Positions 756 to 58,000 of a stretch of DNA of 64,000 bases are shown piece by piece; the stretch's first letter is position 1, and every line of letters starts with the position of its first letter. The notes below the pieces were generated by a model that did not search any database, was not told the origin of the DNA, and saw nothing but the letters and a program-made list of their open reading frames with translations. Origin of the DNA: Eutreptiella sp. 'Long Island Sound 2002' (taxonomy: Eukaryota; Protista; Euglenida). Both the position numbers and the translations under genes were made by a program. The DNA lies in assembly GCA_964036045.1 (NCBI GenBank), contig OZ038378.1, forward strand, positions 2,356,001 through 2,420,000, read 5' to 3'.

Positions 756-3700
756 CTGCAAGAATGAGGGCAGCCATGCAAATGGAGGGGGGGTGATGAC
801 ATGCAGGGGGTTTGGTGGGGGGGGGAAGGGGGACCCCCTCCTCCGAACTGTTGGGTATGCGGCCCAAGTGTGATCCGACTATTCGCAACGCCCCTATTTG
901 CATGTACGGTAGGGTTGCATCAGCCTGGGTATTTCCAGCAATGGGTACAGAAAACCTCAAGACTGCGGGTGTCTGAGGCGGTCATGGGGTTTGAAATACA
1001 AACTGGGGTTAGAGAAACATCATAGGGTGAGAAATGCATCAAGGGTAAAGTGGAAGCCTAGCCCACAAGCCTAGGACCTCAGGTCTCAAATGTCTTGCAG
1101 CCCCGGTGCCTGACCCCTGTCTCACCCCAGTCTCTTCTCCCCTCCCCCGGCGTGGCTGAGGTGCAGCTGTGGGGCTGTGGAGGTGTGGGGTGGTGAGGCT
1201 GCAGAGGGCTGTGTGGCGGTGGGGCTGGACGGGCGCCGGGCCATACCTGTTCCACCAGCGCACTCAACTCCTTGCCGCCCTCCACAACGCGGTCCACTAT
1301 GTAGAGCCCCATCAGCAGCACCTTGAAGTTGGGGTCCAAGTCCTTCATGATTTGCAGCACCGTTTCCAGGGCCCCGTTCCGGACCTTGTCACAGGCCTCC
1401 CCCTGAGAACAAGGGCATGGCAAACGGCAGAGCACTCGGGGAAGGACGTTACTTGAGAATGGGGCAGCGTGTCCCTCACAGGGCCTTACTGATGGCCGGC
1501 TCTGCCGCAGGAATGCGGCGAATGTGAATTATCGCCGATTCACGTTGGNNNNNNNNNNNNNNNNNNNNNNNNNNNNNNNNNNNNNNNNNNNNNNNNNNNN
1601 NNNNNNNNNNNNNNNNNNNNNNNNNNNNNNNNNNNNNNNNNNNNNNNNNNNNNNNNNNNNNNNNNNNNNNNNNNNNNNNNNNNNNNNNNNNNNNNNNNNN
1701 NNNNNNNNNNNNNNNNNNNNNNNNNNNNNNNNNNNNNNNNNNNNNNNNATCGGAATGACTGGACCACTTGGGCCAGACCAAAATTCCAGACCACACCAGG
1801 CCCACTGACTCCACAAGACAGGGTGCACTAGAGGGCGGCCTGGTGGCGCATACCCATGTGGGAGTAAAGCCGGATGTACACGAATTGGCGGCACTTCTGC
1901 GGTTGCCAGTTTACCGATGGAAACTCTGGGAGGCCGTTGGCAAACCGGAACAAGAAGCTGCTGAGCTCCCGTTCTTGGCCACCCCGAGCGGGGGACTTGA
2001 TGGGCAAAGTGATGACCTGCATAGAGGAAGTACATGGCAGAGGACCCACAGCTCATGTACACCCCAAAGTGCTCACCACGTCGCGCTGATCATGCTGAGA
2101 TCCTTATTTTGGGGTGAAGGACATGTTGGGGTCTCTTGGAGATGAATCGGGGGGTGGGGCAGGGCTCCTTTTAAGGGGAGGGAGGGTGGGTCCAGGGGGG
2201 TGGGTGGGTGGGTCCCCCCCGCCCCCGAAGGCGCTGAAGAAAATTTTGGGTCCAAACTAATTGCCGCCAAAGGCACCAGAGACAATTTTTGATCGGCCAA
2301 AGTCGCCAAAAGAAAATTTGGCCCAATCTTTTTTAGGGGGAGGGGAGGGGGGGATCCAGGGGGGTGGGGGCACCCCCCCCCCCACCCTCACCCCAGCCCC
2401 CCAAGTGGTGCGGAGTTGTCAAACGGGGCCCTGGTGGGGGATCGAGCCCCGAATAAGATTGCCAAGGAGGGGTCCTGACGGGCCCCTGGGCCCTGCACCC
2501 TGCCATCCTCTTTCACCCTGCTTCTGAACGCCCCCAGCAGGGGGCTGTTGGACCGAAGACAGTGGTTGGGTGGATCCGACTTTGGTCCCCCAGTAGCGAC
2601 CACGAAAGCCCAACAAAGAAGAGGGCACCGAAAGCGCTGCTCCAGGACACAGGACGCCTGCAGTGCGAGAGTGGGGTGGGGTAGGGTGGGGTAGGGTGGA
2701 GGGTTTGCCAGTTGGTACTGCTGGTTTGATGGCTGTAGACGGCGGATGCTTTTGCGGTGCAGTGGCTCCCATGCTCCCCGAAATAGAGTGACTGGGGAGC
2801 GGGGTGGGCTGTGGGTGATAGTGAATTACTGGTCCCATTGCACACGGCTGCAGCATCTTGCCCCCGCAATGCTGCTCTGAGGCCAGAAATGGAGGGGGGG
2901 CGGACACGGGGCAGGGGTGGGGAGCTGAACGGGGGAGGGGGGCTGCAGGGCGTGGGGCTTGAACCACGGGGGCTGCTCCCAGCCAGGGTTCGACCGCCAG
3001 GGGCGTTCAACCGTTTCAGGCGTTGTAGAGAGGGGGGAGCCCCCCCCCCCCCTTCGTTGACCCAAACCTCGGGGGTTGGTGGGTCAGGCGGTCAGCCGCC
3101 GGGCTCCGGGGGGGGGGGGGGGGGCAGTCGGTGGGTACCCCAACATACATACCTCAAAATGATCCCCATGACGCGCTGATCATTTTGAATATACACAACT
3201 GGGGGAAATTTTTTTCCAAAACATTTGCCCATCAACTCAGGCTCCCATCAGCCAAGAACCGACCCGGAGGTCGGGTCGGGATCAAAATCCTTTTTTGTGT
3301 TTTTCATCCCTTTTTGAATTCTCCACGAAATTCCGAGTATTTGAGTATAGACACATAGGGTCAAACAAAAAAAATTCCCCCTGCCATATGCCTAAAACAA
3401 AATCTCCGGCGCCCACAAAACCCAGTGTTCCGTACAACCATTTTGGGGTCTGTAGAGCCCCCCCCCCCCCCCCCCTTGGGGTCAGGTCCTGGCTGGGAGC
3501 AGCCCCCATGGCATGAACTGGGGTGGGGTGAGGGCGGGCACAACAAGCCTCACCAAAGGGGGGGCGCAGCGCGAACGAAGCACAGTGTCCGTCACATGAA
3601 GCCACAACAACTCTCACCAGAACGTGCACAACCCGCCGAACGCCTGCCTGGAAATCACAGCCCACAAAACGCCCACGTGGGGGCAGAGGCCAAGAACCCC

Positions 3701-6700
3701 AAAAATAAACCAGCACCCAAATGGGGCATTCCCATCCCCTCCCCCCCACCTCGTGCTTGATGGCCCCAGCCAGAACAAAGAGTCATGCCCCCCCTCCCTT
3801 GCATTTGTCACAGGAGCTTGTGGTGAGGTCTGGGGCTTCATTCCGCTTGGCCTCGGGAGTTGATGGTTGTGGAGGAGCCACTTGTTCCACTGAGTCTTGT
3901 GTCTGCGTGATGTAGTTGGGCAGGCCTGAGTGCATGGGGCTCCCAGTGATTGGGAATGATGGGACGACCGGGCCATTCCTACTCCCCTGCAGGGAGCATG
4001 GGTCTCATGGCAACGGGGAAGATGCATATGGACGGGCAGGGCAGGCAGTCGAGCGGGCGGAATGGATGGAGGAGGGTGGAACAAGCACTCTTGTTAAGAG
4101 CAGGCGCTGACGAGGTTCCCTAACACAATCACGCTACCCCCGACCTGCACCTGCACTGACGTGCCCCGCAACATCCCAGGCCCATACAGCACGCATACCA
4201 AAATGAAATTGGATCCTTCCCCGTTCTCGAAGTGGTACTGCACGGTTGCAGATCCTGAGCATTTTTTAATGTCCTGCTGCCAAGCCTCTGCATACTGCCT
4301 CTTGGCAGCCTCCAGAAGCATCCCAGGGAACCACAGCTTGACATACGGCTTCACCTGACAGAACAAGTGGGATGTAGAACAGAGGCACAGGAACCCAACG
4401 TGAACGGATTCCAGTCACTCACCAGAGCAAATACTTGGGCCATACGCCCTCGGGGTCTTCCGCTCCACCATAGTACCTTGGCTCCTTCTGTGCTTTCTTC
4501 AATTGGATTGATGTACGACTCTGTGTCCGCTGTCTATGCTTTGCCCTTTGTCCCCTGTGGCAATCTCTTTTGCAAATGCGAGCAGCAGCACAGGCACAAC
4601 GATGGACAGCAGGCAGGAGCACAGAGAGGAAGAGAGGGGCGGCTGGCAAGAAGGGGGCTGAAGCACGTAAACATGAGGACCAAAGCGGGTAAGAGGGCAG
4701 GAGTGAGACGAGTGTGAGCATACATTGGGGTTTGAGAGAAGCGGAGGGGGCGCACCAGAGAGATCACGCAGCAGTATGGCAAGCGAAGGCAGGCAGAAGG
4801 CATGAAACATGACGAAGGGCAGCACGTGAGGCAAGAAGAGATGGGAAACCACAAAGGGCATTGGCCGGTACAACGACAAGAACTATTGTCAATTCAGGTC
4901 AGAGATGTCCGGCTGACACACAAACAGTGTCAGCGGAACCCATGGGAGATTGACCTTGTGTACAGCTGTTCACGAAAAGCGCCAGAAACTAGTCAGAGCA
5001 TGCGAACAAGGCAAGGGCGAAAGCAGGCAGGCAAACCGAGCGGCTGACAGATCAAGCAAGCACAGCGACGCAACGACACAGCAAAGTCAGGGCAGGTGGC
5101 AGGCCAAATGGATCAGAAACATGATGGCAAAAGGCCGGTGTGAGGATAGCGAGATGAAATAGAGAGAGGAGAAGGTATGGAGGAGAGAACGGCAGGAGGG
5201 GCAGCCGAGCTCAACAACAATGATGACAAGGTCCCGCAACCAATGGCACACAGTGCGACCCTCATACAACTGCCGGATTCCTCTGTTACGACACCGCATA
5301 TCAGAGAGCTGGGCAGTCAACAGTAAGGCCCTAGGAACGCAACATGTCGGCTTTGACATACATAAACATGAATCTAGGCCTTTGGGAACTCGCCGGACTT
5401 TCGACCCGAATAGAGGGGGGCTCTTGAAACGGGGCTTGAAGGCCCTCCCCCATGTCAATGTTTACGGGCCCCTGAGTGTGCTTGAGTGTGGCAACGGAAT
5501 TGAAATGGCGGTTGGCATTGTGATTGAGGTGCTGAGTGGGGTTTGTTTGGGATTTCCGTTGGAATTGGGAGTGGCAGAGGGTGTAGCTGTGGTGAGGAGG
5601 CACTGTTGTACCTGGCAGAGATGTTGCGGGAAGGTACAGTGACTGGTGTGTCGAAAAAAAAAGGCCCACCTGCCCCCGCCCGGGTCCTTGTTCATCCTGC
5701 CCTATCCAATTTCAGTGCCCAGATTACTGATCCCAATCCCAATGATCATGCTGATCCCACTCCCAACCCCATTCCCACCCGCAATCATAACAACAATCAC
5801 AACCCCCATCCCATTGCTGGACCCATTCACACAGCTCATCAGAATCCCAATCCCCATCCCACTCTCGCAACCCCACACCCAATTCTATCACCATCCCGTT
5901 TTCACACATCGTGCATGACCCCCCCTTCCACACCCCTCCCACACCCCTCCCCACTCCAAATACCCAGGAGGGGTCGGCGAGCTGTGTCACCCTTGGGGTC
6001 CCATGTCATCTGAGGTGACGAAGGCGCAGCGGGCTCACCCGGGCGCTCCGCTCCCTGAAATGCTCCTGGAGCAGGGAACTGTTCCGCGTGCCCCAGGACC
6101 TTCCATCCACCAGGACACCACCCCCCCAGCTGGTGTAGCACTCTGTGCAGCGCTGCCTGTGCCCCTCTAGGTCAGTCAAAGAGCGCTGCAGACCACACGT
6201 CCTGGCTACGCGCCCCATGCACCCCTCCGGGGTTCAGTCGTGGGCCGGCGGAAGCGGCAGGTCACATGACCCACAGACGCCCCCAGCAGCCATACTGCTC
6301 CCCTGCCCCACCCCTGGGGCCCGGAGCACCTGGCACACACAACCCCTCATGCGGTGGCACACAACCCGGAGAGCACACACAGAACAGCACCCGCCACGAC
6401 AGATGCCGGGCCAAGCACCTGCCAGAGGTGAGACCCGGTGCCCCCCCCCCCCGGACGCGCGCCGACGACGCACACAGGCACGGCGGTAGCTCCCTCCCAT
6501 CAGCGCATCGGTGGGTTAGGGGATCGTCAACAGTCTGGGCGGCTGTGAAACCAGACGATCGGAGGCAGACGCCCAATCGCACCAGCGAGGTAAAGACGCA
6601 CAGGCTGTGGGACCCTCGCCTTCAGCGCAAGCCGAGACCCAACCCAACCCAACCCACTCCAAAAACTATTCCTACCCGGGACCACGCTCGCTCCCAGCAG

Positions 6701-12700: not shown

Positions 12701-15700
12701 ATCCAATCATGATTTCCAACTCACAAAAAGAGGGGGGGGTCAAATTCTCTGTCTTCGGCAAGACAATCTCGCAGAAAACTGGTGGTTACAAGGCGAAAGA
12801 CACACTTCACAGTGTGCAATAGCACCCCCAAGCACCCAATGGCCAAATGCAGTAAAATTGCATACAGAGGGCCTCAAACATGCTTGACATGTGATATTTG
12901 ATGGTTGTGATGGGGGCAATATTAAAAAGATCGGTTTTCCTTGCGATGTTGGAATTTTCCATGTTTGAGCTGTTTAGGATGAAAATCGCTATTGCAGTCT
13001 AGACCCTATTTCTAGCGCAAATAATAATTATACTGCTTTCGGCAAGTCCACCTAGGAGAGAGTTGTGAAATCAAGAGCTGGTGCAAACGCCACACATCCC
13101 CACTTTTGGGGGATATTCACGCTGTATACCACAAGGTAAGGAATGAGATGTTCAACCCCTTGTAAAGTTATCATTTGGGGACCCAAAAGTGTACCCAAAT
13201 TTCTTCATTGTGACCCGGCCCCTCATCCTGATTCCCCTCAGCCGGATGCCATTTGTTTTGCATCCTCAGCAAGGTTGATCACGGTATTTGGTTATTGGGT
13301 GTTGGGGTGAATCAGGGCACATTGCAAAGTTTTCTGAGGCAATTGCCATCAACAACTATTAGCCAACTTTGTGGCATGTTGTTAAGACCAATTATCTGCA
13401 AGGTGAACTTGCTGGAGGGACGAGAATTCCAAAACTGCTTTTTTTTTGACCTCGTGACTACTCACAATATCGCCACCGTCAAACATCCCATGTAAAACAT
13501 GCTTTGGCCCTCTGTAGGTGTTTTCCACCCTTCAGGGTGGGGACAAGGCTATGGTGCACAAATTGCTTCAACAGGTTTTCAGCCTCAATAACTCAAAAAT
13601 AAAAATCCCAAAACCTTTTTTCTCGATTTGGTGAAAACTCACAATGATCAACTATTGTATGTAAAGCATGTTCTTGGCCCTCTTAATGTGGCTTTCACCA
13701 TATTTGTCCTTTGGGTGTTGGTGGTCGTGGGGGAAAGGGGGGGGGGGCGTATTGCCTCGTGCAAAATTTGCTTGAGTTGGTCCCGTCCACAACTCAGCCT
13801 TGTGGGTCATTCAAGGAGCATTGTGCCACACACCACGCTGTCCCTTGCACTCCAGGATACATGGGGTATGCTGTCAAACTCCACCTGTAGGCAGACCCCA
13901 CGGAACACCTCTGCCACGGGGGGGACGTCTCCTCGCTTTTGTACACGACTCCCTCCCCCAGTAGAAGTGGGCCGAAGGCCCCCAGGGCGGGGGGGGGGGG
14001 GGGGGGGGCAGTTGGGGGGGGGGGGCTAGCCGCCGAGGAGGGCCTCTCTAGGGACTGGCTTGTCGCTAGGGGGGGGGGGGGTGAGAGGATTAGCAGAGGA
14101 CTAGTCCAGTCTGGCAGAGACGCGGTGGCCTAAGGGGTTATTCTACAACAACAGAGGCCCCCACTCTACCTCCTCACCAGTGTAGGGTTAGGGTTAAGTT
14201 AACCCTAACCTGAACAGGGAGGGCTGCCACGTGGGCAGGGGGGGGGGGGTGCCTCCCATCCACGCTCTAGTGCCTGGGAAGGGAGGGGTGCCACGTGGGC
14301 AAGGGGAGTGAAAAAAAATTCGATTGCCTTCGGCAGTGCACCTCGAAGAGAGGCTGACAGTCAGCCAATCAGTCGGTTAGCCAGTCAGTCAGACAGAAAC
14401 ACACAGTTTGGGTTTTTTGCAGTGGCAGACTCGGCCCTAAGCAGTGGGGAGGACATGGGTCTGCAGGGCAAGTAGTGGCCGAATGGTAATGCAGTCGGCC
14501 GCAGGCCCTGTGAATGGGGGTTCGAGCCCCGGTGGGGCGAACATGACGTCTGCGGCGCCGCCGACGGCAGTCCACCGACCAGGATTTGAACCGCCGACCT
14601 AAAAATCTGTAGTCGGCTGCGTGACCATTCGACCAGTGTTTGTTGTTACAGCATTGTGCCTCCCCACTGCTTAATGCCTTCTGAGCACAAACTTTTGACC
14701 CCCCCCCCAACCCCCCCACCCCACCCCACCCCCTCAAAAAAGTGATATCCAGTTTTAGGGGATGGAGGCCTCAGAATCAAAAAATCCATTGGGGGATGGT
14801 CTTACTGGGCAAAATAATGATTTTACAAGGGGTTGGACATCAAATATCATGCCTTTGGGTATGCTACGCGAATGACCCCAAAAAAGGGGGGTATACGACG
14901 CCCGCGCCTGCGCTTGATCTAACAACCTCTCTTCGAGGTGATTTTCAGGCGCCTTCGGCGCCCCCATATGTAAGGCCCGTAGCTATTGACTCTTGGCAAC
15001 TAAGTGGGCCTGGAGGGCAGGGAGGGGTGGGGGGGGGGGGGGGCGCGTACCAGAACTGAGGAGACAACCCTCCCCCACCCCTGTGACCTCTGCATCCGCC
15101 ACCAGAGCACACACAATTCCAGCCCGTTTGGACTGGCCCGCCGGTGCAAAAGTGGAAATCTCTCTCCAACTGCTCTCCTTCACACCTCACTCCTCATCCC
15201 AGCACTGGGTAGGACCATCAAAACCCCCCACCCACCCAGTGTTGCCGAGTGCGACGGGCCCAGAAGGGTCAGAAGAGCGAGTGTGCCTCTGCCACCAGGG
15301 CACCCCACTTCTTGGAGAAAGTGCTATCCGGATGGAGCCGTAGTACCACTTTCACACACCAGTTGTGAGGAGGTGCATGACCGGCCTGCCCCCTCAGCCC
15401 GGGTGGTCCGCGAATCGCCTCCACCTGTCCACAAAGGGAGGGGGATGCAGGTCCATGCAGTACTTCATATGTGTACGTGGGATAGCGCAACACACTTCGT
15501 TGTTGGTTTGTGCCATGTTAGCCTCTTGGTCCTCGTCTTTGGCTTTCTTTTTCTTGGACTTCTTTGATTCCGGCTTCTTGGATTTGGCAGTGCCGTCGTC
15601 CCCGTCCTAAAACACATCAACACGAGCGGGTCCGCAGCAGGGCGCTCGATGTGCCGGCCTCTGTGGTGACCCGTGTTGCTGCGGCCAGAATTTTCACTCC

Positions 15701-37000: not shown

Positions 37001-40000
37001 TTGTGCCACTAAGCAGGCTGCAACCAACAAATTCTATTGCCTTCGGCAGTGCACCTCGAAGAGAGGCTGACAGTCAGCCAATCAGTCAGTTAGCCAGGCC
37101 AGCAGTCAGTCAGACAGAAACACACAGTTTGGCTTTTTTGTCAGTGGCAGACTCGGCTCCAAGCAGTGGGGAGGACCAATATGCACCGGGCAAGCAGTGG
37201 TCGAATGGTAATGCAGCCGGCCGGCGACTTTTTGGTCGGCGTTTCGAATCCCGGTCGGGCGAATAGGGCGGGGCGGCGCCGCCGACGACCGTCGACCGAC
37301 TAGGAATCGAACTGCCGACCTAAATCTCTGCAGCCCGCTGCGTTACCATTCGACCGGTGTTTGATGTGACAACGGATTGCGGCCCCGCTGCTTGGAGCCT
37401 TCTGAGCGAAAATTTTTGACCCCCAGCCCCCCCTCAAAAAAGTGATATCCAGTTTTAGGGGATAGAGGCCTCAGAATCAAAAAATCCATTGGGGGATTGT
37501 CTTGTTGGGCAAAATAATGATTTTACAAGGGGTTGGACATCAATCATCATGCCTTGGGGTATGCTACGCGAATGACCTCCCAAAAAGGGGGGGTATACGA
37601 TGCCCGCGCCTGCGCTTGATCTAACAACCTCTCTTCGAGGTGATTCTGCGGGTTCAGGGAGGCCATGGCCTTGGCTACACACGCCTATCGGCTACTACGC
37701 CAGTCCCCATGGGTGCTAGAGTACCCGTATTGACACCACGTGATGACCCAAACCCATTCCACAGCTGACAAAGGGTTGTCCAAAACAGTCAAAGTTCGAA
37801 ATATTCTCAACGGCCACTGAACAGCCCACAAACGGCAATTTCAGGGCTTTCGTGGGCCCGTGGCCCTTGCTACATGGGCCAAACAGCTGCTACATGGGCC
37901 CTTCTTGGTGCTAGAGCACCTGCATTGGCACCCCATGATGACTCCAACCCATCCCACAGCCCTTGAAGGGCTTGCAGAAAAATCAAGTTTTCGAAACTTC
38001 TTCAAATGCCCCTCATCAACCTACAAACAAAATGTTGGGGCTGTCACAGGGCCCATGGCCCTGGCTAGCCCAGCTGGTACGTGGGTCTCTATGCGCGCTA
38101 CAGTACCGGCATTGACACCAAATGATGACCCAAACCCATCCCAAAACTCTCAGAGGGTTTTCAAAAAAGTCAAATTTTCGCAAAGTTTCAAGTGCAGTGT
38201 ACATGACATCTTGATACAACCCTGATCAACAAAGTAGAAATTTCCAAGTAAAAACAACACATCTAAAAATTGCGTCAAACATGTTGGTGGGCTTTATGCT
38301 CTCAATTTTTGTCCACACTTTCCCTGGTGCTGGGCGAAGAACCAGTGCTTGTGCAATGCCCAAATGGGCATCCATGGTGAGGTCCTAGTCGGGGTCCATG
38401 TTGTGTTCCAGGTGCAATCTCTGCCAAATGTTTTATAAGTATCTGCTTCATCGCGTACATAGGGACCGTCACATCCTGTCTGTTGGATCCATCAGTTGTT
38501 AAGTGGAACCCTTTGCAGAAGGGGTAGGATGCAGCAAGTACAAACAAAGGAGCAAACGTTTCCCTCCCAGCAGAAGTGCGGTTTCAGGGGTGCCGTTGTT
38601 CCAGCCAGCTTGCCTTTATGCAATGAGGCAGTCAGTACAAATATTGCTCCCCAAGAAGCCCTGGTGCCCCATCAAAATCCGGACACCAACATTTGTGGAC
38701 AGTGGAGAACAGGTACGATCACCAAATGTACAAGAGTGCGTCTCAGCCCAATCACATTGGCTTTTCTATAAATGGGCAATGGTAAAATTGTTCAGGATCT
38801 GGTCACAATTTTTTGCACCAGAAATCGTCTTGAGGAGGGTTGTTAGATGAAGCCCAAGCAGTCATACACCCCCTTTTGGGGGGGCATTCACGTAGCACAC
38901 CCCGATGTATAAAATTGGATGGTCACATGTAAAATCATCATTTTGGGAGACCAAATGATCTCCCAACGGTTCTCTCAATTTGGACACCTCAGCCCCCGCC
39001 CCCCCAGGCTGGTACCGGTTTTTTCGGGGGGTGGGGGGTTGGAGAAAATCGAAAAACACCAAACCCGCCCCCCAGTGTGTGACCCCGAAATCATGATTTT
39101 ATATCATTTTTCGAATTTGAGGTGAAAATTTTTGGAGGACTGGGGGCTTTGAGTGTCCATTTGCCACCTGGGAACCTCCCGTGCTGTCATATCTGGGGTA
39201 CCTCTGTGTTCTCCTTTTCTTCCCCACATTTGTGTCTCCTCTTGATTTCTTCGAGTGCGTTGAGCATTTTAAGCTGTTAGTGGCTCTTACAGGTGACATG
39301 TACTGCCTGGGTGGCCACTAGGGTTGAACCTCAGCTAAACGGGGCATAGGCAATACCTTCATAGCAGGGACACGGTGGCTCAAGGGTAGGATCAGGAGGG
39401 CAGTCATTAAAGATGAGGGATGGATGCACGGATGCTACATCCGGCCCAGCCCCTAAGCCCGTTCTTCCATCCCACATCCTCTACGCCTCCTACCCCATCC
39501 CCTGCGCATATTGCCCCCAACCCATGCCCAATCAGCCAACACCCCATCCCCTATGCACCTCCCATCCCCCATGCTCTTGTCCCGTAACCACGGGGGCCGC
39601 CGCGAGCCAATGTGTGACCCCGAGGGGTGTGCAACTGTTTTGGGGGCTGTAGGGGGGGGGACCCCACCCCCCCTTCATTGACCCAAACCCAGCACCTTTC
39701 CGCCAGGCACCTCCAAGCGCGCAAGCAGACAAAGCTAACAAGACGCACTGTGACCAGTCATAGCTCGTGATTGTTTTGTTGCACTGCAACACTTCCAAAG
39801 CAGCACTCAATGTTGCCTTGAGTTCGCCCATAGGCTATCGAATGTCTCTTAGGCTGCCTTGGGTCAGCTCTCTCTCCCCCCTGTGGAACCCGGTTACCCA
39901 CGCATGGTCGGTGCAGTGCTCTTAGTAACCGTGCATGCAAAACGGGTTATGCCGGTATCCACTGGCCCACAAATAGTGTCCCTTCCCGTTGTTACAACCA

Positions 40001-43000: not shown

Positions 43001-46000
43001 GACGGCATGCCGCAGCACTTGTAGGCGAACGTTGATACACGGGGCACAAGGGGAACGTTGACAGAGGGACCCGTCGTCAGTGACGAGAGGAAAGGAAAGT
43101 CCACCCGCGCATTCAACCGACCCCCCAACAGTGCACTTCCCAACAGACATCACGCGTGACCAGCCATCACAGTTCCATGGGCACATGAAAGAAGACGGGG
43201 CTATCCCGGTCCGGTCGCTGCGCCACACCATGCGACAACTTGCGGCGCGGAGCAGCACTGGAGCACGGCCGGTGCAAGAGAGCAAAACACAGAGAGGGCC
43301 ATACCACTGTACAGTTCCCGACGTGCTTCCCAAACTCGCCAAGATTGCCGAGGTGGACGTAGGAGTCCTTGCCATTGAAATGCAGCGAACCCTCCGGGAT
43401 CTCCACCCCCTGCCACGGAATGTTCACCAAGTGCCCATTGCGCCCGTGCACGATGTCTCTCACCGATGTGCCAGTGCCCTCGTTCATGGGCCAGTGCCCG
43501 AGCAGTGCACGGGATTTGTCATATAGCTTGAGGCCCATGACGTTGCCAGCGAATTGATGGTCCAGTTCGGGCTACGAAACACGTGCGTGAGCGGAGAGGT
43601 GGCACGAAAGCCACGGCACCTGCCGTGCCACTGGCTTTGCCGTCATTGACAGACGTGAACAAATGTGCGGAGTCCAGAGGGAAAATGGTTCCAAATTGGT
43701 ACTGCAAAACCACAAGGGCTGAGTCACAGTTCCCAACGGTTGCCGAACGCCAAGTGCAACACATACTTCTCAGTGTGGCGCACACAACTCATCTCAGATT
43801 GGTATCTGACCAGCGACCTTGCACTAATGCTGCACCTTCTGCCAATTGAGCTACCAGGGCCGTTGTTAAAACACCCACCAGGGCAGCATCGTGTAGGTAG
43901 CATGTCAGACCATAAAGAAGATGAAGCTCTATGGAGGTGTGGCGGGGCTGCAGGGGGGGGGGGGGGGTTGATTAAGGTGAGCTAAGCAAAATATAGGTAG
44001 AACCTTTGGTAGACTGACCTTCTTTAACACAGCCACCCACCATGAGCGCCTGGATTGCAACCACGCAAAGGCACATAACTTCAAAAAGGAGTGGGAACGA
44101 GGAACGATGCAAATTGGCGGGTGAAAAGCACGCTTCAGGGGTGGGGGAATTGAGGGCCAAGTAAATGCGCCGGTTGGTACTTCTGGGTGTACACTCATTT
44201 GGGTTTTCAAAAATTGTCTCCGTTGCTTGTCCATAGGCAGCAGGGAACATATTTTTGGTAGGTGAGAGTGGGACAGTTGTCTTTTTTGCTCACCAGTGAT
44301 GCTTCTGCCCCTAGGCATCCCTCCCATGCCGGCACCAGCATGCTTCACACTCAGTCATACCCATGACTGTGAAGTTTCGAGGGTGCTCACCACCACTGTT
44401 GTGGGACATGTAACACAGAGCAGAGAGTTCCGGGTCACCAAGTGTTTCACATCAGCGGTGCACAGCATTTCCAGGCATTTTGCCTTTTGGAGATAAAGCA
44501 GGGGTGGCTTGGCACTGTGGTCTGTGAACAGGCCGCCTGGTCCCTTGTGCAGGAGGGGCAGAACTAGCAGAAATTCCAAAGCCAACATGCGGTGGCCTGG
44601 TTGCTACAAGCATGGTCCGGGCGCCCAGAGTGTCTTCTGTGTGTTTTCCTGTGTTCTTGTGTGTGTGTGTGTGTGTGTGTGTCTGTTTATGGGGGGGTCT
44701 GCGTGGTTTAAGTGAGGGCATGGGGTAGCAGGCCAAGGTCTTTGTTGTCAGAGGATTTTGCCCATCACAGCTGCACCCATCACAGCATCAGTTTACCTAC
44801 CTTGCGCAGCTCACTGGACCTTCCGAAGCTTGATCACTGCCAATTCCGGTTCCAGTGGTGGCAAGTGCAGCGATCCTTCCCTGATTCCGCGCTTCCCCGT
44901 GCCCCCTTGCAGACATCTCAAATTTGGTCCCTGGGTGTCCAGGCTTGTCAGTACTCCGACGCAGGGTGTTGTGTTGTGTTGCGTTGCGTTGCGTTGTGTT
45001 GTGTTGTGTTGTGTTGTGTTGTGTTGTGTTGCGTTGCGTTGTGTTGTGTTGTGTTGTGTTGTGTTGTGTTGTGTTGTGTTGTGTTGTGTTGTGTTGTGTT
45101 GTGTTGTGTTGTGTTGTGTTGTGTTGTGTTGTGTTGTGTTGCGTTGCGTTGCGTTGCGTTGCGTTGCGTTGCGTTGCGTTGCGTTGCGTTGCGTTGTGTT
45201 GTGTTGTGTTGTGTTGTGTTGTGTTGTGTTGTGTTGTGCTGTGCTGTGCTGTGCTGTGCTGTGCTGTGCTGTGCTGTGCTGTGCTGTGCTGTGCTGTGCT
45301 GTGCTGTGCTGTGCTGTGCTGTGCTGTGCTGTGCTGTGCTGTGCTGTGCTGTGCTGTGCTGTGCTGTGTTGTGTTGTGTTGTGTTGTGTTGTGTTGTGTT
45401 GTGCTATGTTGTGCTGTGTTGTATTGTGCCGTGTCATGTCGTGCCATGTCGTGTTGTGCGGTGTTCTGTCGTGTTGATGGTGTTCTGTTGTGTTTTGAGT
45501 AGTTGGTTTGTTTTCGTTTCGTTTCGTTTCGTTTCGTTTCGTTTCGTTTCGTTTCGTTTCGTTTCGTTTCGTTTCGCTTCGTTTTATGTGTGTCCCTTGG
45601 TATGGTGACATGTGGGTGTGTCACATGGAGGTAGTGTGCCAGCACTGGCCCTAGGTACACACACATACAGGGGGGCACTGGCAACACATCTGTCTGGCCA
45701 GGAATGGTCGCTGTTCTCAACGCTATGGGCGGAACAAACAGCATGGGATAGCTTCATTGCAACTGCCTGTGCCCCCGACAACTAAGGGCACCTCTCTTCC
45801 ACCCTCAAGGTGGTGGTTGCAAGCGCACACATACTAGCTACCACCTGCCCCTCTTCCAAAGCACACAACCTGCCTAGACACCACTCCGAACCTTGGTGGC
45901 ACAAACACCAAAAGCACACAACTACGAAGGCCCACTGCAGGGCCTCGGTGGAACACACACACCTGCATAACCACCTATGCCCCAGTGCAGGGCACTTGCA

Positions 46001-49000: not shown

Positions 49001-52000
49001 CCGGGAGGGGGGGGGGGATCGACAGAGCCCCCTGGCTAGACCCCCCCTCAAAAGGGCTCAATTGACGGGACCCCCAAAATCCTAACGAGACTGACCCCCG
49101 GGCCCCGGAGGTGACCCGGACCCAAAAATCGGCAAAAAATAAAAATGGGATTTTTGGAATCAGCGCTTCGAGGGGGTTCAGAAAAGCCATCATTTGCCAT
49201 ATATTTGGGGGGAAATTTTTCCATTTTTCATGCTCAAAAAAATTCTATTGCCTTCGGCAAGGCAATAGAATGGCAAGGGGAGAGGTGCGAGAGGGCAGTT
49301 TAAGAAGGGAGGAGACGCATGCTAGGGCAGGGACGCTATGGCATGAGGGGTTGGCATGCATGGTCACCACATGAAAACCATTTTGGTTGTCACATAGTGT
49401 CGGGCACCTCCGAACTGTTGGGTATGCAGCCCAAGTGTGATCCGACTATTCGCAACGCCCCTACTTGCATGTACGGTAGGGTTGCATCGGCTTGGGTATT
49501 TCCAGCAATGGGTACTGAAAACCTCAAGACTACGGGTGTCTGAGGCGGTCATGGGGTTTGAAATACAAACTGGGGTTAGAGAAAACATCATAGGGTGAGA
49601 AATGCATCAAGGGTAAAGTGGAAGTGAGTCAGGGTGCTGGTAAAGATGAATTGGACACGGTACACAAAACGGCTTGTATTGCGCATTCACCGTTGGTGTG
49701 CAAGAAAAGGAATGAGATGGATTGGAGAAGGGGTTGCATTGGACAATTGGACACAGTGCACGGAACGGCTTGCATTGCGCATTGTTTGTTGGTGTGCAAG
49801 AGAAGTAATGAGATTATTTGCAGAAGGGCTTGCATAGGACAATTGGACACGGTACACATAACGGCTTGCATTGCGCATTCACCGTTGGTGTGCAAGAGAC
49901 GAAATGAGATGATTGGAGAAGGGCTTGCATTGGTCAATTGGACACGGTACACATAACGGCTTGCATTGCGCATTCACCGTTGGTGTGCAAGAGAAGTAAT
50001 GAGATGGATTGGAGAAGGGCTTGCGTTAGGCAATTAGACACGGCACAGATAACGGCTTGTATTGCGCCACTACCGCTGGTGTGCAAGAGAAGTAATGAGA
50101 TGGATTGGAGATGGGCTTGCATTGGACAATGGGACACGGTGCACGGAACGGGTTGCATTGCGCATTGATCGTTGGGGTACAAGAGAAATAATGAGATGGA
50201 TTGGAGAAGGGATTGCATTGGAGAATTGGACACAGTGCACGGAACGGCTTGCATTGCGCCATTTCGCGTGTTTGGCACGGGTTTTGACCGGCCCTAGGCA
50301 GGGCTAGAGACTGCAAAAAAGGTCCTTTCGTATCCTTGTAGGCATATACTGTCACAACATCCCCACTTGCAGCCCTCGGAGTGGGTAGCGTGGGGTCCCC
50401 GAGGCCACCAGAACCGCCAACATAGCAAAAATGGCTAAAAACTGCATAAACTGCATAAAAGCGCTCGTCCCACTCCGCCCCATACAAACCCCATGGAGTC
50501 GGGACCCGGAAGCACTTTTTCAGCTCGGAATTAAAAAAAAGCAAAGGATTCATGATTTTCGACCTAAAAAAGGGGGGGGTCATTTGTTGACCCCCCACCC
50601 CCGACCCCCCTGCCCCCCCCCCCAACTCCCTCCAAACCTCCAAAAAGTGGGTTTGAATTGGGGGGGGCGCTAGGGGGGTCCGGACCAAAAACTCTTTGGG
50701 GGATGCGGTTATTGGACAAAACAATCATCTTACAAGGGGTTACACAAACCATTCAACCCCTCGGGGTAGGGTACGCGAATAGCCCCAAAAAGGCCCAAAA
50801 AGGGGGGGTATGTGGCGTTTTCCCCGATATACGGGCCTGCGTGTCTTTGATCTAACAACCCATGCGAGGTGATTCTATTGCCTTCGGCGAATCCACCTTG
50901 CGGAGAATCTACCCCAAGCAACACACACCCAAAATAGGGTAAAAACTACATAAATACGGGCTAAAACATGCTTGGATGGTCATTTTAGGTGGTCACGCTA
51001 TCAAAAAAAATAAGTTTCAGAAACTTCGATTTCTGAGCTGCCCAACGTGAAAAGCTACATACAGGTTGTGTACCAATCCCCTGGGAGCCCCCCCCCCGGC
51101 GCCGCCCCGAATTCAATACCCAAATAAAGTGAAAACCACATAAATACGGCCTAAAACATGCTTTACATACCTTGGATGGTCATTTTGTGTGGCCACGGGA
51201 TCAAAAAATAAGTTTTGAAAACTTCCATTTTTGAGCTGCCAAAGGTGAAAAGCCGCTTTAGCAGGTTGTGTACCAAACCCTTGGGAGATCCCCCCCACAC
51301 GCGCCCAATACCCAATACCCAAAAACACGTAAATACGGCCTAAAACATGCTTTGCATATCTTGGGTGGTCATTTTAGGTGATCACAATATCAAAAAAATT
51401 GTTTTCGCAAACTTCGATTTTTGGGCTGTCCAAGGTGAAAACTTCATCAGCAATATGTGGACCAATCCCTTGGGACCCCCCCCCCCCCCAAGCACTCAAT
51501 GCCCACATGAGGTGAAAAACACATCAATACAGCCTAAAACATGCTTTACATAGCTTGGAGGGTCATTTTGTGTGGTCATGATATCAAAAAAATGAGTTTC
51601 GGAAACTTCGATGTTTGAGGTGTATAGGCTGAAAAACTGCATAAGCAGGTTGTGTACCAATCCCTTGGGACCCCCCCCACCGCACCCAATACCCAAATGA
51701 GGTGAAAAGCACGTAAATACGGCCTAAAAGATGCTTTACAGATCTTGGATTATCATTTTAGGTGATCAAAATATCAAAAAAAAAAGTTTCGAAAACTTCG
51801 ATTATTCAGCTGTCCAAGGTGAAAAATTGCATAAGCAGGTTGTACACCAGCCCAATCACTCGTGTAAGCCATTATTGCTGGAAACAGTCATTTCCCGTCT
51901 CTAGCACGGGTTTTGACCGGCCCTAGGCAGGGCTAGAGACTGCAAAAAAGGTCCTTTCGTATCCTTGTAGGCATATACTGTCACAACATCCCCACTTGCA

Positions 52001-55000
52001 GCCCTCGGAGTGGGTAGCGTGGGGTCCCCGAGGCCACCAGAACCGCCAACATAGCAAAAATGGCTGAAAACTACATAAACTGCATAAAAGCGCTCGTCCC
52101 ACTCCGCCCCATACAAACCCCATGGAGTCGGGACCCGGAAGCACTTTTTCAGCTCAGAATCAAAGAAAAGCAAAGGATTCATGATTTTCGACCTAAAAAA
52201 GGGGGAGTCATTTTGTCGACATTTTTGACCCCCCCTCCCCCCCACCCGCCCACACCTCCCTGCAAACCTCCAAAAAGTGGGTTTCAAGTGGGGGAGGGGG
52301 GGGGGTCTAGGGGGGTCCGGACCAAAAACTCTTTGGGGGATGCGTTTATTGGACAAAATAATGATTTTACAAGGGGTTACACAAACGATTCAACCCCTTG
52401 GGCTAGGGCACGCGAATAGCCCCAAAAAGGCCCAAAAGGGGGGGTATGTGGCGTTTTCCTCTATATACGGGCCTCCATGGCTTTGATCGAACAACCTCTG
52501 CGGGGTGATTTTCAGGGTCACTAAACAGCTCCTACCCAGCGTGAAAATGGCGAAGTCATCACTAGCAATGGGCCATCTGGGGGGGGGGGGGGGATGGGGG
52601 TACCCGGAGTTGGGACCCGGGACCTCCACCATGGGTTAGGGGGTCCATATACAAGAAAAAAGTTCTTCAGGACCCAGGTCCAAATACACACACAGCGGCC
52701 ACAATACGCAAAGAAAATTTGACCCCCCCCCATCCCCCCCCCAAAACAAGTGGTACCTAGGTCGGGGGGGTACGGGGGTCAACATCCAAAAAATCATTGG
52801 GGGATCATTGTTGGTCCTAAAATGATGATTTTACAAGGGGTTAGATGTCAGAAACCATACGTTGGGGTATGCTACGCAGACGACCCCCCAAAAGGGGGGT
52901 ATACAACACCCGCGCCTGCGCTTGATCTAACAACCTCTCTTCGAGGTGATTTTCGGCCCCTTCGGCGCCAGATTTTATCATAACGGATTAAAGGTGCCTG
53001 TCAATTGAGCCCTTTTCCCAACCCCCCCCCAGATTTTGGCGGCTCTGTTGACCCCCCCCCCCCCTCACTTGAAAACCCGGTATGCCCAGGGCAGGTGACC
53101 CAAGTAAAGCCCCCGGCCACGGCCTCCCATCAGCGTCCATACTCCACTGCATCCTCCTCACCAACACCTGATCGAACGATTCAGACAGGAGTGCAGTCTG
53201 AATGGTGTGTGCCCCCCTGGCCCGTGCAGACAGACAGGGATCAAGACGGACAGACCGCTTTGTCTGTAATCTTGAAGAGAGTCATTATGCTCCGTCGCTC
53301 TGACGTACGGAACCACAGCTCAATTGTGAACCCCGTCAGCTTTGTGCACAACTCCGGGATGTGTGGGATTTGAATGTACGACGGGTCCCCGGTCTTCGAG
53401 CCCCCCAATTGAGGCACCTGGTCCTCTTTGCCACAACGTCCGTTATTGGGCACACTCGTTAGGCCTGTGAAAGCACAAGCAGTGTGTATATGGCAATGCA
53501 ATGGGAAATTCTATTGCCTTCGGCAGTGCACCTCGAAGAGAGGTTGACAGTCAGCCAATCAGTCCCTGAGCCAGCAAGCAGGCAGTCAGACAGATACACA
53601 CAGTTTGGGTTTTTTGTCAGTGGCAGATGCGGCCCCAAGCAGCAGCGACGCCATTCGCAATTCTATTGCCTTCGGCAAGTCCACCTCGCAGAGAATCTAC
53701 TGCGAGCAACACACACCCAAAATAGGCTGGAAACTACATAAATACCGGCTAAAACATGCTTTACATACCTTGGATGATCATTTTAGGTGATCACGGTATC
53801 AAAAAAACAAGTTTCGAAAACTTCGATTTTTGAGCTGCCCAGGGTGACAAACTGCATAAGCAGGTTGTGTACCAATCCCTTGGGAGGACCCCCCCCCCTT
53901 GGACCTAATACCCAAATCGGGAGAAAAACACGTAAATACGGCCTAAAACATGCTTTACATACCTTGGATGGTCATTTTAGGTGATCACAATATCACAAAA
54001 ACAAGTTTCAAAAACTTCCATTTTTGAGCTGTCCGGGGTGAAAAACTGCATAAGCAGGTTGTGCACCCGTCCCTTGGGAGACCCCCCCCCCCCCCGACCT
54101 GATACCCAAATAGGGTGAAAAACACGTAAATACGGCCTAAAACATGCTTTCCATAGCTTGGATGGTCATTTTGGGTGGTCACAATATCAAAAAAACAAGT
54201 TTCGAAAACTTCCATTTTTGAGCTGTCCGGGTTGAAAAACTGCATAAGCAGGTTGTGCACCCGGCCCTTGGGAGACCCCCCCCCCCCCCGGACCTAAGAC
54301 CCAAATAGGGTGAAAAACACGTAAATACGGCCTAAAAGATGCTTTGCATAGCTTGAAATGTCATTTTGGGTGGTCACAATATCAAAAAAACAAGTTTCAA
54401 AAACTTCGATTTTTGAGCTGCCTGGGGTGAAAAACTGCATAAGCAGGTTGTGTACCTCCCCATTCACTAGGCCATTATTGGTGGAAACAGTCATTTCGCG
54501 TCTTTGGCACGGGTTGTGAACGGCCATAAGCAGGGGTAGACACGGCAAAAAACGTCCTTTCGTATCCTAGTAGGCATATACTGTCACAACATCCCCACTC
54601 GCACCCCTCGGAGTGGGTACCACGGGGTCACCGAGGTCGCCAGAACCGCCAACATAGCATAAATGGCTGAAAAGTGCATAAACTGCACTAGCGCTCGTCC
54701 CACTCCGCCCCATACAAACCCTATGGAGTCGGGACCCGGAAACACTTTTTCGGCTCAAAATCGAAAAAAACCAAAAGATTCATGATTTTCGACCCAAAAA
54801 AAGGGGGGGTAATTTTTTCGACATTTTTGACCCCCCCCCCACCCCCCCACCCCCCCACCCCCACCCCCACCCCCCCCCCAAAAAGTGGGTTTCAAGTGGG
54901 GGGGGTCTGGGGGGGTCCGGACCAAAAACTCATTGGGGGATGCGTTTATTGGACAAAATAATGATTTTACAAGGGGTTAAACTAACAATTCAACCCCTTG

Positions 55001-58000
55001 GGGTAGGGTACGCGAATAGGCCCAAAATGGGGGGTATGTGGCGNNNNNNNNNNNNNNNNNNNNNNNNNNNNNNNNNNNNNNNNNNNNNNNNNNNNNNNNN
55101 NNNNNNNNNNNNNNNNNNNNNNNNNNNNNNNNNNNNNNNNNNNNNNNNNNNNNNNNNNNNNNNNNNNNNNNNNNNNNNNNNNNNNNNNNNNNNNNNNNNN
55201 NNNNNNNNNNNNNNNNNNNNNNNNNNNNNNNNNNNNNNNNNNNTTTTTCCAAGGGTGGGGGGGGTCTGGGGGGGTCCGGACCAAAAACTCATTGGGGGAT
55301 GCGTTTATTGGACAAAATAATGATTTTACAAGGGGTTAAACTAACAATTCAACCCCTTGGGGTAGGGTACGCGAATAGGCCCAAAATGGGGGGTATGTGG
55401 CGTTTTCCCCATATATACGCCTGCCTGGCTTTGATCTAACAACCTCTGCGAGGTGATTATCTAAGCAGTGGCCGAGTGGTAGCGCAGCCGGCCAGCATCC
55501 GTGTGGCCGGCGGTTCGAATTCCAGTCTGCCCAATTTGGCGCCGCCGCCGGCGGCGGCGCTAAATGTCAGCGTGTCAGGATTCGGACCAACGCCTGCCCA
55601 CATGCTGTTGGCTGCGCTACCATTGGACCGCTGGCCGTGTTACGAGCACCGTGCGTCCCCACTGCTTGTAGCCTATTAAGCAAAAACTTTTGACCCCCCC
55701 CCCACCCCCCCCCCACCCACCCCCCCACCCCCCGCTCAAAAAGTGATATCCAGTTTTAGGGGGTAGAGGCCTCAGAATCAAAAAATCCATTGGGGGATTG
55801 TCTTGTTGGGCAAAATAATGATTTTACAAGGGGTTGGACATCCAATATCATGCCTTGGGGTATGCTACGCGAATGACCCCAAAAAAGGGGGGTATATGAC
55901 GCCCGCGCCTGCGCTTGATCTAACAACCTCTCTTCGAGGTGATTTTCAACCTCCGCAAGCCTACTACAAGCCTTGGCTGAATTATGAAGGGTGTGAGTCA
56001 TACCTGACGCCAGCGCACGTTGAAACGGACGGTTTCAAACGCCCAAAACAGATTTGGAACGCATACAAAGGGATACCCCTAAATCCCAAAGGGACGCAAG
56101 CGGACACACCCCAAGTTGACAACTGGTCTGCCCAAGCGGCGAAGGTCTCACGCCAGTCGACAACACTGGTTGTTGCCGTCATTCATGTAGATCACCTAGC
56201 TTATGGCTCGCAGATCGCAGCAATTTGGTGACTCGCACTATCACACCAACCCCAGATGCACCAGAGCATCGTACCTTTTGATTCAGAGGGTGGACACTCT
56301 CTTTGGTGAACATTGTTGGCCAGAGCACTTTGGACGTCGCTCCGAGGCATGCATGCATCCTCCCTGAGTCTATACTGCTGTATGGACATAGAAACAGAAG
56401 AAAACAGACATTGGGAGTACCCCATACGATGCACGCACGCTTCATTTATACGCCTTGCGCGTAACACACCAGGCCCGACAAGCGAGCCTCTGCGCCTGAG
56501 CTGGTGTAGATTAGCGCCCGAGCTCCCGTGGACGGGCACCAGGCGCCTTGCCGTTGTCATGCAAGCACTACTGTGCTTTTCGCTTCTGTTTGGCAGCATG
56601 CAGTTTGAACGTCAGGACACCACAAAGGCTACAACCTAGGGACACCACAACGGCTGCTCCTACATGTGCAGAGTAGGCAGCAGCACCACAACAACCCGGA
56701 CAGCACACCAAATATCACACAGTGGTATGGGGGTGCAACAACACAGACAGAGGCTGGTGCAGGTCGTGCTGGCGGGTGCGACTGCTGCTGCTGCTCGCTC
56801 ACCCTGTGCAGAACCAGCCCAACTAATTGGCTCCAGATCTTTGAACTCGCTGAGTGGCAGAAAATTTTGAATACAATTTCCGCCTTCCACGCCAAAATAT
56901 TGGCAGCACAGCAGCAGCAGCAGCATTGTCTGAACCATGGTGGCTTCGGAGAGAACTGCGAGACGCACGGGCTTCACAGGACAACCTGGACGGCGGTGGT
57001 ACTCCCTCTCCTTCTCAGCGCGGTCCGCGGCTTTGGTTTGCAGGCTCGGGAGAGCACTGGCATTGTCTTGCTTGCCTCCTTTTTTGCCCTGAGGGCTGCC
57101 GAGGCTCTGCATGAAGGGGGCGCTCTTGGGGCGCTCTGGGCGGTCAGGTCGCCCTTGTGCAACCACAATCTGCATGAGCGAGCGTGTGTGCGCAAGGCAG
57201 ACTGCTATCGGACATCACTACAAAAGGGCGCGGCTGTCCAGCACACCCCGTATCAGAGAAGGGTGCTCGCTGGCATGCTTGCCGTGGACGACTCATGAAC
57301 CGCCGTTGGCCCACCACATCCCTGCTTCTTCGTCGTTGGGAGAAAAAAAATTCGGAAGAGCCCCTTACCTTGTGACTTGCTGTTCCTCAGCGTTGAACAT
57401 ACTATAGACACCTGATCACAGCACATCTTGCCCTTGTTCTACGGCTTTCACTGTTACTCCCGTTCTCCAGTGGAGGGCAACGCACCCAACGCAAACAAAA
57501 CAAGTGAGGGCGCGTGTGGAGACCAAGCGAACGAGTGCAACATGGGTCCCATAACAAGGGAATGATGTCAACCAGAGGACTGGCTTGCAGAACACGCTTG
57601 CTCTCATTTCTGCTTCAATCTTACAACTTCGTTTCCCTTGTTCAAGTGTGGTGTGGTACAGTGTGGTATAGTGTGGCACAAATGTGGTGTGGTGTAGTGC
57701 AAAACCTTTCATGGTTTGGATGTAACAAGAACTGTGGAGCCAGTGGGAGGAGATGGGGCATTGGTGCACTTGCACGGAGATGCATCTGACCAGACTCATC
57801 GAAAAAAAGGAAAGCTCATCATCTCTGCAGAGGTGCAGCACATGACGCACAGCACAGCCACCACATCATCGCACACCACATCATACACCACACAAAATAC
57901 AGCACTCAGCATACAGCATGGGACGGACAGCACAGCAACGCAGACACACCACGTCACACCTCAGAGAAATTGCAAATATTTTTCCCGCGAATTGTATGTT

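Follow-up and report, generated by a model that had tools for sequence, protein, structure and literature searches.

The DNA considered here, referred to as the window, is a stretch of 64,000 nucleotides from the euglenid Eutreptiella sp. 'Long Island Sound 2002' (assembly GCA_964036045.1, contig OZ038378.1, positions 2,356,001 to 2,420,000 of the forward strand). It contains three dispersed copies (A, B, and C) of a cassette in which two tRNA-like units face each other across a GC-rich centre, and the cassette is the internal module of a short, protein-less transposon. An earlier note, made from the letters of the window alone, had reported these three copies and their facing units, and all three were recovered in the same places with an nhmmer profile of the unit, which also set the limits of the arms. 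The perfect 15-bp outer inverted repeat of copy A (14438-14452 and 14659-14673) and the perfect 22-bp palindrome at the centre of copy C are likewise as described there. The note had also held that the A and B boxes, the motifs of an internal RNA polymerase III (Pol III) promoter, are largely kept across the six arms. Under a strict unit test (TRGYNNARTGG, a gap of 20-45 nt, and GGTTCRANNCC), this is true of the two arms of copy A, whereas the other four arms are off by 1-2 bases; in 200 dinucleotide-shuffled windows, no unit passed both boxes. The hairpin that the note wrote as gccgRc...gYcggc, together with its differing anticodon-like loop, is a family-wide feature, present between the boxes as CCGAC...GTCGG around a variable loop. 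When folded as single-stranded DNA, each of the three cassettes is more stable than 200 of 200 dinucleotide shuffles (z scores in the Table). In copy C, the left-hand module is missing entirely, as are the outer repeat and the leader.

The limits of the carrier were obtained by comparing the surroundings of copy A with 30 genomic hits by BLAST. Homology stops at identical positions each time, limits that 20 or more copies have in common, and the repeat is a discrete, non-coding unit of ~620 bp. Consensus sequences of 22 and of 49 copies contain a 15-bp asymmetric terminal inverted repeat, CACCTCGAAGAGAGG, which lies 1 nt from one end of the element and 20 nt from the other. By the published definition, a Helitron2 element has one such repeat 0-2 bp from its 5' end and the other about 20-30 bp from its 3' end (PMC3627910). 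As read from the consensus, the 5' repeat is itself a hairpin (ACCTC-GAAGA-GAGGT), and the 20-nt tail contains a second one (ATTGCC-TTC-GGCAGT in window orientation). Copies A and B run canonically on the minus strand, and in this direction the first base of the element is a T. Among the 29 copies with both ends, the 5' flank reads AAA in 26-29 and the 3' flank reads TTT in 26-29, and in 28 of the 29 there is no direct repeat between the flanks. The element thus lands between AAA and TTT without duplicating its target. Because the placement of the repeats, the hairpins at the ends, the 5'-terminal T, and AAA/TTT insertion without target duplication all match the definition, the carrier is a non-autonomous family of the Helitron2 (rolling-circle) type. 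The rolling-circle carrier suspected in the earlier note is therefore supported; the undescribed class of element that it proposed is not, since the carrier is a single family of this type.

All of the sampled cassette types share one backbone, with 79-90% identity to the family consensus, and the cassette is mobile only as part of the ~620-bp element. Within it, the units are placed as an inverted pair about 165 bp and about 300 bp from the element ends. A tRNA-derived short interspersed nuclear element (SINE) or a SINE dimer was considered and rejected: the units are not at the 5' end, they are inverted, and the element has no target duplication and no A-rich tail or tail of the type made by long interspersed nuclear elements (LINEs). 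A miniature inverted-repeat transposable element (MITE) or foldback element was also rejected, given the asymmetric end repeats, the missing target duplication, and a long foldback that is internal. The ends and the lack of a target duplication thus exclude both of the described types that the earlier note had named as possible matches. As a separate observation, the 206-bp 3' module (consensus positions 420-625; 14736-14941 in copy A) is 96% invariant while the cassettes of the lineages differ at half of their variable positions. A conserved Helitron end usually needs only ~30 bp, and the module may hold a function of its own.

Table. Coordinates of the elements, cassettes, and units of the window, and of plastid-type tRNA clusters elsewhere in the genome
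Feature	Position	Strand	Remarks
Copy A carrier, ~620-bp non-autonomous Helitron2-type	14319..14941	- (canonical 5'->3' direction)	flanks A-run / TTTT; limits common to 20+ genomic copies
Copy A cassette	14438..14673	.	outer 15-bp inverted repeat, two convergent units, GC-rich centre; DNA fold z = -5.46
Copy A left unit	14469..14545	+	nhmmer profile and regular expression; A-box and B-box consensus both passed
Copy A right unit	14569..14643	-	nhmmer profile and regular expression; A-box and B-box consensus both passed; T5 run in loop
Copy B carrier	37032..37643	-	both ends intact; flanks CAAA / TTC
Copy B cassette	37160..37395	.	DNA fold z = -7.75
Copy B left unit	37191..37265	+	nhmmer; B box with 1 mismatch; T5 run in loop
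Copy B right unit	37291..37365	-	nhmmer; mismatches in both boxes
Copy C, different cassette lineage (group g1 type)	55460..55942	-	compared with lineage consensi; DNA fold of the cassette z = -5.64
Copy C left unit	55459..55539	+	nhmmer
Copy C central palindrome, perfect 22-bp (GCC)n/(GGC)n	55539..55560	.	
Copy C right unit	55563..55641	-	nhmmer; mismatches in both boxes
Plastid-type tRNA cluster loci	L031-L035, L039-L040, L044-L057		G000 chromosomes C1, C2, C4, C5, C7, C9, C21, C25, contig C2317

The family is abundant. Genome-wide counts were made in the 2.28-Gb assembly, and the reversed-pattern control was 0 in each search. Convergent 12-mers of the A region occur at 623 sites, convergent exact B boxes at 100 sites, and single units with the exact A 12-mer and B 8-mer 1,719 times (852 + 867). 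Corrected for the share of motifs that are intact in a set drawn independently, the size of the family is estimated at ~3,000-4,500 cassettes. Loci were picked by motif, and sets anchored on the A region and on the B box were compared as a guard against circularity. In all of the sampled DNA, most of it from loci that had been chosen on pairs, the unit profile finds 67 convergent pairs and 0 solo units; 4 of the pairs lie in DNA not chosen for pairs, namely, the three copies of the window and one chance pair in a flank (L067 707-875). One group of four same-strand units of a single lineage, 2.1-9.4 kb apart (G000:C1:86856827-86870746), may be a local tandem duplication or a chain of elements.

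The units are not working tRNA genes. ARAGORN predicts no tRNA anywhere in the window or in any of 45 cassette loci, and the Rfam tRNA covariance model (RF00005) gives no match at the gathering threshold, none at E<=10 on each copy of the window, and none at E<=1 on 15 diverse loci. Thus, neither the tRNA finder nor the covariance model, the kind of check proposed for the arms at the outset, recognises any of the arms examined. Furthermore, the T stem and the acceptor stem of the units are unable to pair. Functional tRNA genes were rejected on these grounds, and the units are, as judged from their sequence, tRNA relics whose cloverleaf no longer folds. That they form an inverted pair of tRNA-derived units, with motifs like the A and B boxes at the spacing of a tRNA, stands as first described. 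Against true tRNAs, the unit profile reaches a best E of 2e-5, in an alignment that is gap-free from the D loop to the T loop. With tRNA-Cys(GCA), the alignment is gap-free over the whole ~74 nt, and three tRNA-Cys(GCA) rank 1, 2, and 5 among 46 metagenomic tRNAs that share the 12-mer, a set used solely to type the parent tRNA. In addition, one lineage has CTGCAGA or CTGCAAA as a relic of the anticodon loop. The parent is likely to have been tRNA-Cys(GCA). In the metagenomes, a strict unit pattern has 0 matches and a looser one finds 115 contigs; of the 80 examined, about half contain ordinary bacterial or phage-type tRNAs, and none of the 80 has the pair or the backbone of the element.

Other tRNA-like sequences of the genome were seen in passing. 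The top RF00005 matches are plastid-type tRNAs and tRNAs within nuclear plastid DNA (NUPTs). Plastid-type clusters (Asn-Arg-Val, Ile-Ala) occur many times on nuclear chromosomes (Table), some with point changes, and look like repeated insertions of plastid DNA or amplified copies. A pattern search for TGGTAAAGC..CTGCAAA..GGTTCAAACC gives a small group of loci (G000:C4:134293312, C6:102586238, C7:20996146, C14:53103369, C24:10121997, and C6:41671854), in which the distance from the D loop to the T loop is the same as in the cassette unit. They could represent nuclear genes for tRNA-Cys(GCA), or else a different tRNA-like repeat.

To describe conservation within the family, 49 full elements were aligned and consensi were derived for four cassette lineages (n=25, 11, 4, and 3 copies). 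All four consensi have box A (TRGCNNAGTGG-like) and box B (GGTTCGANNCC) 32 nt apart, where a type-2 Pol III promoter would have about 30-60 nt, and the units are colinear with true tRNAs. Among the four, the columns that are invariant make up 39/44 (89%) of the four boxes, 94/189 (50%) of the cassette outside the boxes, 109/129 (84%) of the 5' module, and 198/206 (96%) of the 3' module. The boxes are therefore conserved much more strongly than the remainder of the cassette (39/44 vs 94/189, p = 1e-6), and the box positions that do vary are the degenerate positions of the Pol III consensus. The variable parts match three portions of a tRNA gene: the acceptor strand on the 5' side together with its flank, the loop of the anticodon with the 3' strand of its stem, and the acceptor strand on the 3' side. 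Each of these lies outside the two box blocks and is constant in length to about one base. However, the boxes are no better kept than the backbone (39/44 vs 307/335 invariant, p = 0.57). The earlier note had expected them to be more conserved than the flanking DNA of the element, and had itself named this outcome as counting against its proposal. Its further suggestion, that loop divergence together with box conservation hints at selection, is upheld in part: the boxes do exceed leader, loop, and trailer among the lineages, but they do not exceed the backbone, and nothing of the kind is seen in single copies.

The last point follows from the changes private to individual copies. In the largest lineage, the backbone has 0.016-0.025 private substitutions per site, the box blocks have 0.022-0.039, and the variable segments have 0.017-0.037. 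Because private changes strike the boxes as often as other parts, the inserted copies appear to be free of constraint; indeed, their B boxes decay by loss of the CpG in TTCGAA. Nearly all of the cassette's excess variation resides in variants that are common to sub-lineages and, on this evidence, the uneven pattern within the cassette is not the product of a local mutation hot spot acting after insertion. It would instead be the lineages that kept propagating which retained the backbone and, to a somewhat lesser degree, the box blocks. A further possibility considered was that the hairpin is kept through co-evolution of its arms. It was rejected: in every region, the identity between left and right arm within an element equals the identity between sister elements. 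Since its own arms are no more alike than those of sister elements, the foldback as such shows no sign of maintenance.

Taken together, these results lead us to favour, with modest confidence, a reading in which the cassette, an inverted pair of decayed tRNAs, forms the interior of an abundant Helitron2-type transposon that encodes no protein, and in which the box blocks of the pair are kept in the propagating lineages and play a role in cis. In this model, a decayed tRNA gene, most like tRNA-Cys(GCA), would have been captured and duplicated in inverted orientation around a (GCC)n/(GGC)n palindrome. Propagating lineages would then keep the box blocks and nearly the whole backbone, leader, loop, and trailer would drift freely, and copies would decay evenly once inserted. 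Because the blocks are kept only in propagating lineages while inserted copies decay evenly, any role would serve the element in cis rather than the host. Such a role in propagation is the best-supported reading, and it is one that we infer from sequence comparison. The most likely form of it might be the loading of the TFIIIC/Pol III machinery, giving open chromatin or short transcripts. The consensus boxes, 32 nt apart in every lineage consensus, and the short T-run that directly follows the unit in some lineages speak in favour of Pol III use.

It should be noted that several points weigh against this reading. A run of four or more T (T4+) lies between the unit's own A and B box in 60/116 arms (52%), which would be unusual in a functional Pol III unit. 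Conservation also extends past the boxes into the rest of the blocks, a width that is not required by a Pol III promoter. The lineage consensi are based on 3 to 25 copies each, and the split between private and shared changes is crude, having been made with samples of just 25 and 11 of the thousands of copies. Finally, the assignment to tRNA-Cys is drawn from three metagenomic tRNAs and the loop relic.

The alternative that survives best, although we regard it as rather unlikely, is that the cassette is a pure passenger, an inverted tRNA relic without a role. If so, the box blocks would look conserved simply as the paired parts of the foldback, and the unpaired bubbles would be mutation hot spots or would be rewritten by template switching. 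Consistent with this idea, leader, loop, and trailer are exactly where the left and right arms differ and hence would be unpaired in the foldback; furthermore, the boxes are no better kept than the backbone, and the cassette as a whole is more variable than the backbone. However, a hot spot of the needed strength would raise private rates 5-10x over the backbone, and the variable segments reach only ~1.3x. There is also no excess of left-right identity within elements, the arms are merely 71-77% complementary, even in the blocks, and the sub-lineages differ by graded substitutions at constant length rather than by the replacement of blocks.

A stronger version of the cis reading, in which the rolling-circle transposon depends on its pair of tRNA-derived sites as landing places for Pol III/TFIIIC, is speculative, and we think it unlikely in this form. 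Convergent boxes might open chromatin or stall replication forks from both sides, and the opened or stalled DNA might expose the single strand needed by an HUH-type transposase. Such a dependence would explain why only lineages with intact boxes keep propagating. If true, it would be the first case in which a DNA transposon is shown to require elements of a Pol III promoter.

It was also suggested in the earlier note that the two units may be active Pol III genes whose convergent transcripts yield double-stranded or hairpin RNA and feed small-RNA pathways. The master copies do have consensus A and B boxes 32 nt apart, the foldback is strong, and in 35/116 arms (~30%), no T4 comes before the partner arm, the first one being within or past that arm, which makes read-through possible. 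However, half of the arms have the T4+ between their boxes noted above, which would stop Pol III early and argues against long convergent transcripts, and a further 19/116 (16%) have one just after the unit. Moreover, the positions of the terminators vary between lineages, and consequently there is no common transcript design. Together with the free decay of inserted copies, these features make the production of long convergent double-stranded RNA less likely than short transcripts or open chromatin, and we consider the model as a whole improbable.

More improbable still is an extragenic promoter in the style of the trypanosomatids, in which the boxes of each unit would act on a divergent small RNA gene whose start lies in the end modules, about 104 bp to the outside of the unit. 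In the trypanosomatids, the sister group of the euglenids, tRNA-like sequences that have boxes A and B only, 30-44 nt apart, drive small nuclear RNA (snRNA) and 7SL genes 104-106 bp away (PMC4950102). The box spacing of 32 nt fits, both units face inward with about 130-290 bp of highly conserved element DNA on the outer side of each, and the A-rich target on the left would give a T-run at the boundary of the element. On the other hand, no Rfam family matches the end modules, the right side has a poly-C tract of variable length and hence no constant distance, and the predicted start on that side is followed a few bases later by a T4 run. In addition, most U3 genes of Euglena are not linked to tRNAs (PMC2784804).

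There is one further model, in which the copies have been adopted by the host. Hardly any credence can be given to such an exaptation, in which they would act within introns as TFIIIC-bound insulators like extra-TFIIIC (ETC) sites: the B box is intact in many copies, and TFIIIC sites act as boundaries in other eukaryotes, but boxes in inserted copies gain private changes at least as fast as the backbone, including the CpG decay of TTCGAA, and the presence of several thousand young, near-identical copies is characteristic of a transposon burst rather than of conserved host sites. An insulator role at each copy, as the earlier note had envisaged, is thus unlikely.

Several features surround the copies in the window. 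Just upstream of copy A, at 14200-14312, a fragment of telomere-type repeat (TAACCCTAACC) precedes a ~50-bp G-run motif that is present twice, after which comes the A-run of the target. Copy C starts 3 bases after a related element that ends at 55456, and variants of the 3' module with a different middle part are present at 55245-55456, 50594-50804, 52231-52441, and 54831-55041. Their interiors are other than the tRNA-like cassette, and these related members of the family near copy C appear to form a head-to-tail chain. Two runs of exactly 200 N, either assembly gaps or withheld sequence, interrupt the window (1549-1748 and 55044-55243), the second of them inside the chained elements just upstream of copy C. 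There are also four tandem arrays (44856-45600, 49553-50355, 51006-54488, and 58627-62409), whose periods are about 10, 96, 190-195, and 350-380 bp; all but the first sit within the Helitron-rich right third of the window. Across the genome, the 24-nt core of the Euglena gracilis spliced leader has 5,458 occurrences at <=1 mismatch (reversed control 0).

The family has consequences beyond the window. Several thousand consensus-like pairs of Pol III boxes are scattered in this genome, and many potential TFIIIC sites are possible. The cassettes could also inflate tRNA counts; 4,882 tRNAs have been predicted in the genome of Euglena gracilis (PMC11252322). Variation is free outside the box blocks and restrained within them, and only in lineages that propagate, a pattern that makes the use of host Pol III factors by a transposon directly testable. 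The host belongs to a phylum in which a function of tRNA-like boxes beyond tRNA genes is already established. An inert cassette would be ordinary, though unusual, transposon cargo. The family would in addition be the clearest case so far of Helitrons carrying sequence derived from a non-coding RNA gene, the capture of which was still treated as unreported in 2023 (PMC10701932). A search of the literature found no description of Helitrons for Euglena or the euglenids and no Helitron family with tRNA or Pol III cargo closer than the tentative case from Arabidopsis reported in the same work.

The family can be compared with several known systems. Like tRNA-derived SINEs, it keeps A and B boxes while the cloverleaf decays, and it has a high copy number; unlike them, it has neither a target duplication nor a tail, its boxes are not 5', its units are inverted rather than tandem, and its ends are those of a rolling-circle element. 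The tRNA-derived SINEs include dimeric ones such as Twin of Culex. The present family also resembles the non-autonomous Helentrons DINE-1/HINE, which are derivatives of rolling-circle elements, in its great abundance, short length, conserved end modules, and a variable centre with a simple repeat; however, the centre of DINE-1 is a tandem repeat or microsatellite, whereas here it is a tRNA-derived palindrome. The tRNA-like extragenic promoters of trypanosomatids (PMC4950102) also belong to the Euglenozoa and likewise combine the lack of a tRNA fold with boxes A and B at about the same distance. They serve the host as single-copy promoters, each for a defined snRNA or 7SL gene, while the present units are transposon cargo and have no recognisable partner gene. 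In Arabidopsis, a cluster of tRNA-Cys(GCA) (PMC10701932) similarly places tRNA-Cys-type sequence within DNA annotated as Helitron. That cluster is a local tandem array whose tRNA genes are intact and expressed, and its Helitron was not confirmed by prediction tools; in contrast, the present family has thousands of dispersed copies, clear Helitron2 ends, and decayed tRNA parts arranged as an inverted pair. The carrier itself is matched by the non-autonomous Helitron2 elements, such as the 657-bp Helitron-1N1_CRe of Chlamydomonas (Bao and Jurka 2013, PMC3627910), in size, in the short asymmetric terminal inverted repeats with a hairpin at both ends, in the 5'-terminal T, in scar-free insertion into T-runs, and in high copy number without coding capacity. 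It differs from them in its euglenid host, in its target, AAA^TTT, and in an interior that is a conserved, inverted, tRNA-derived pair.

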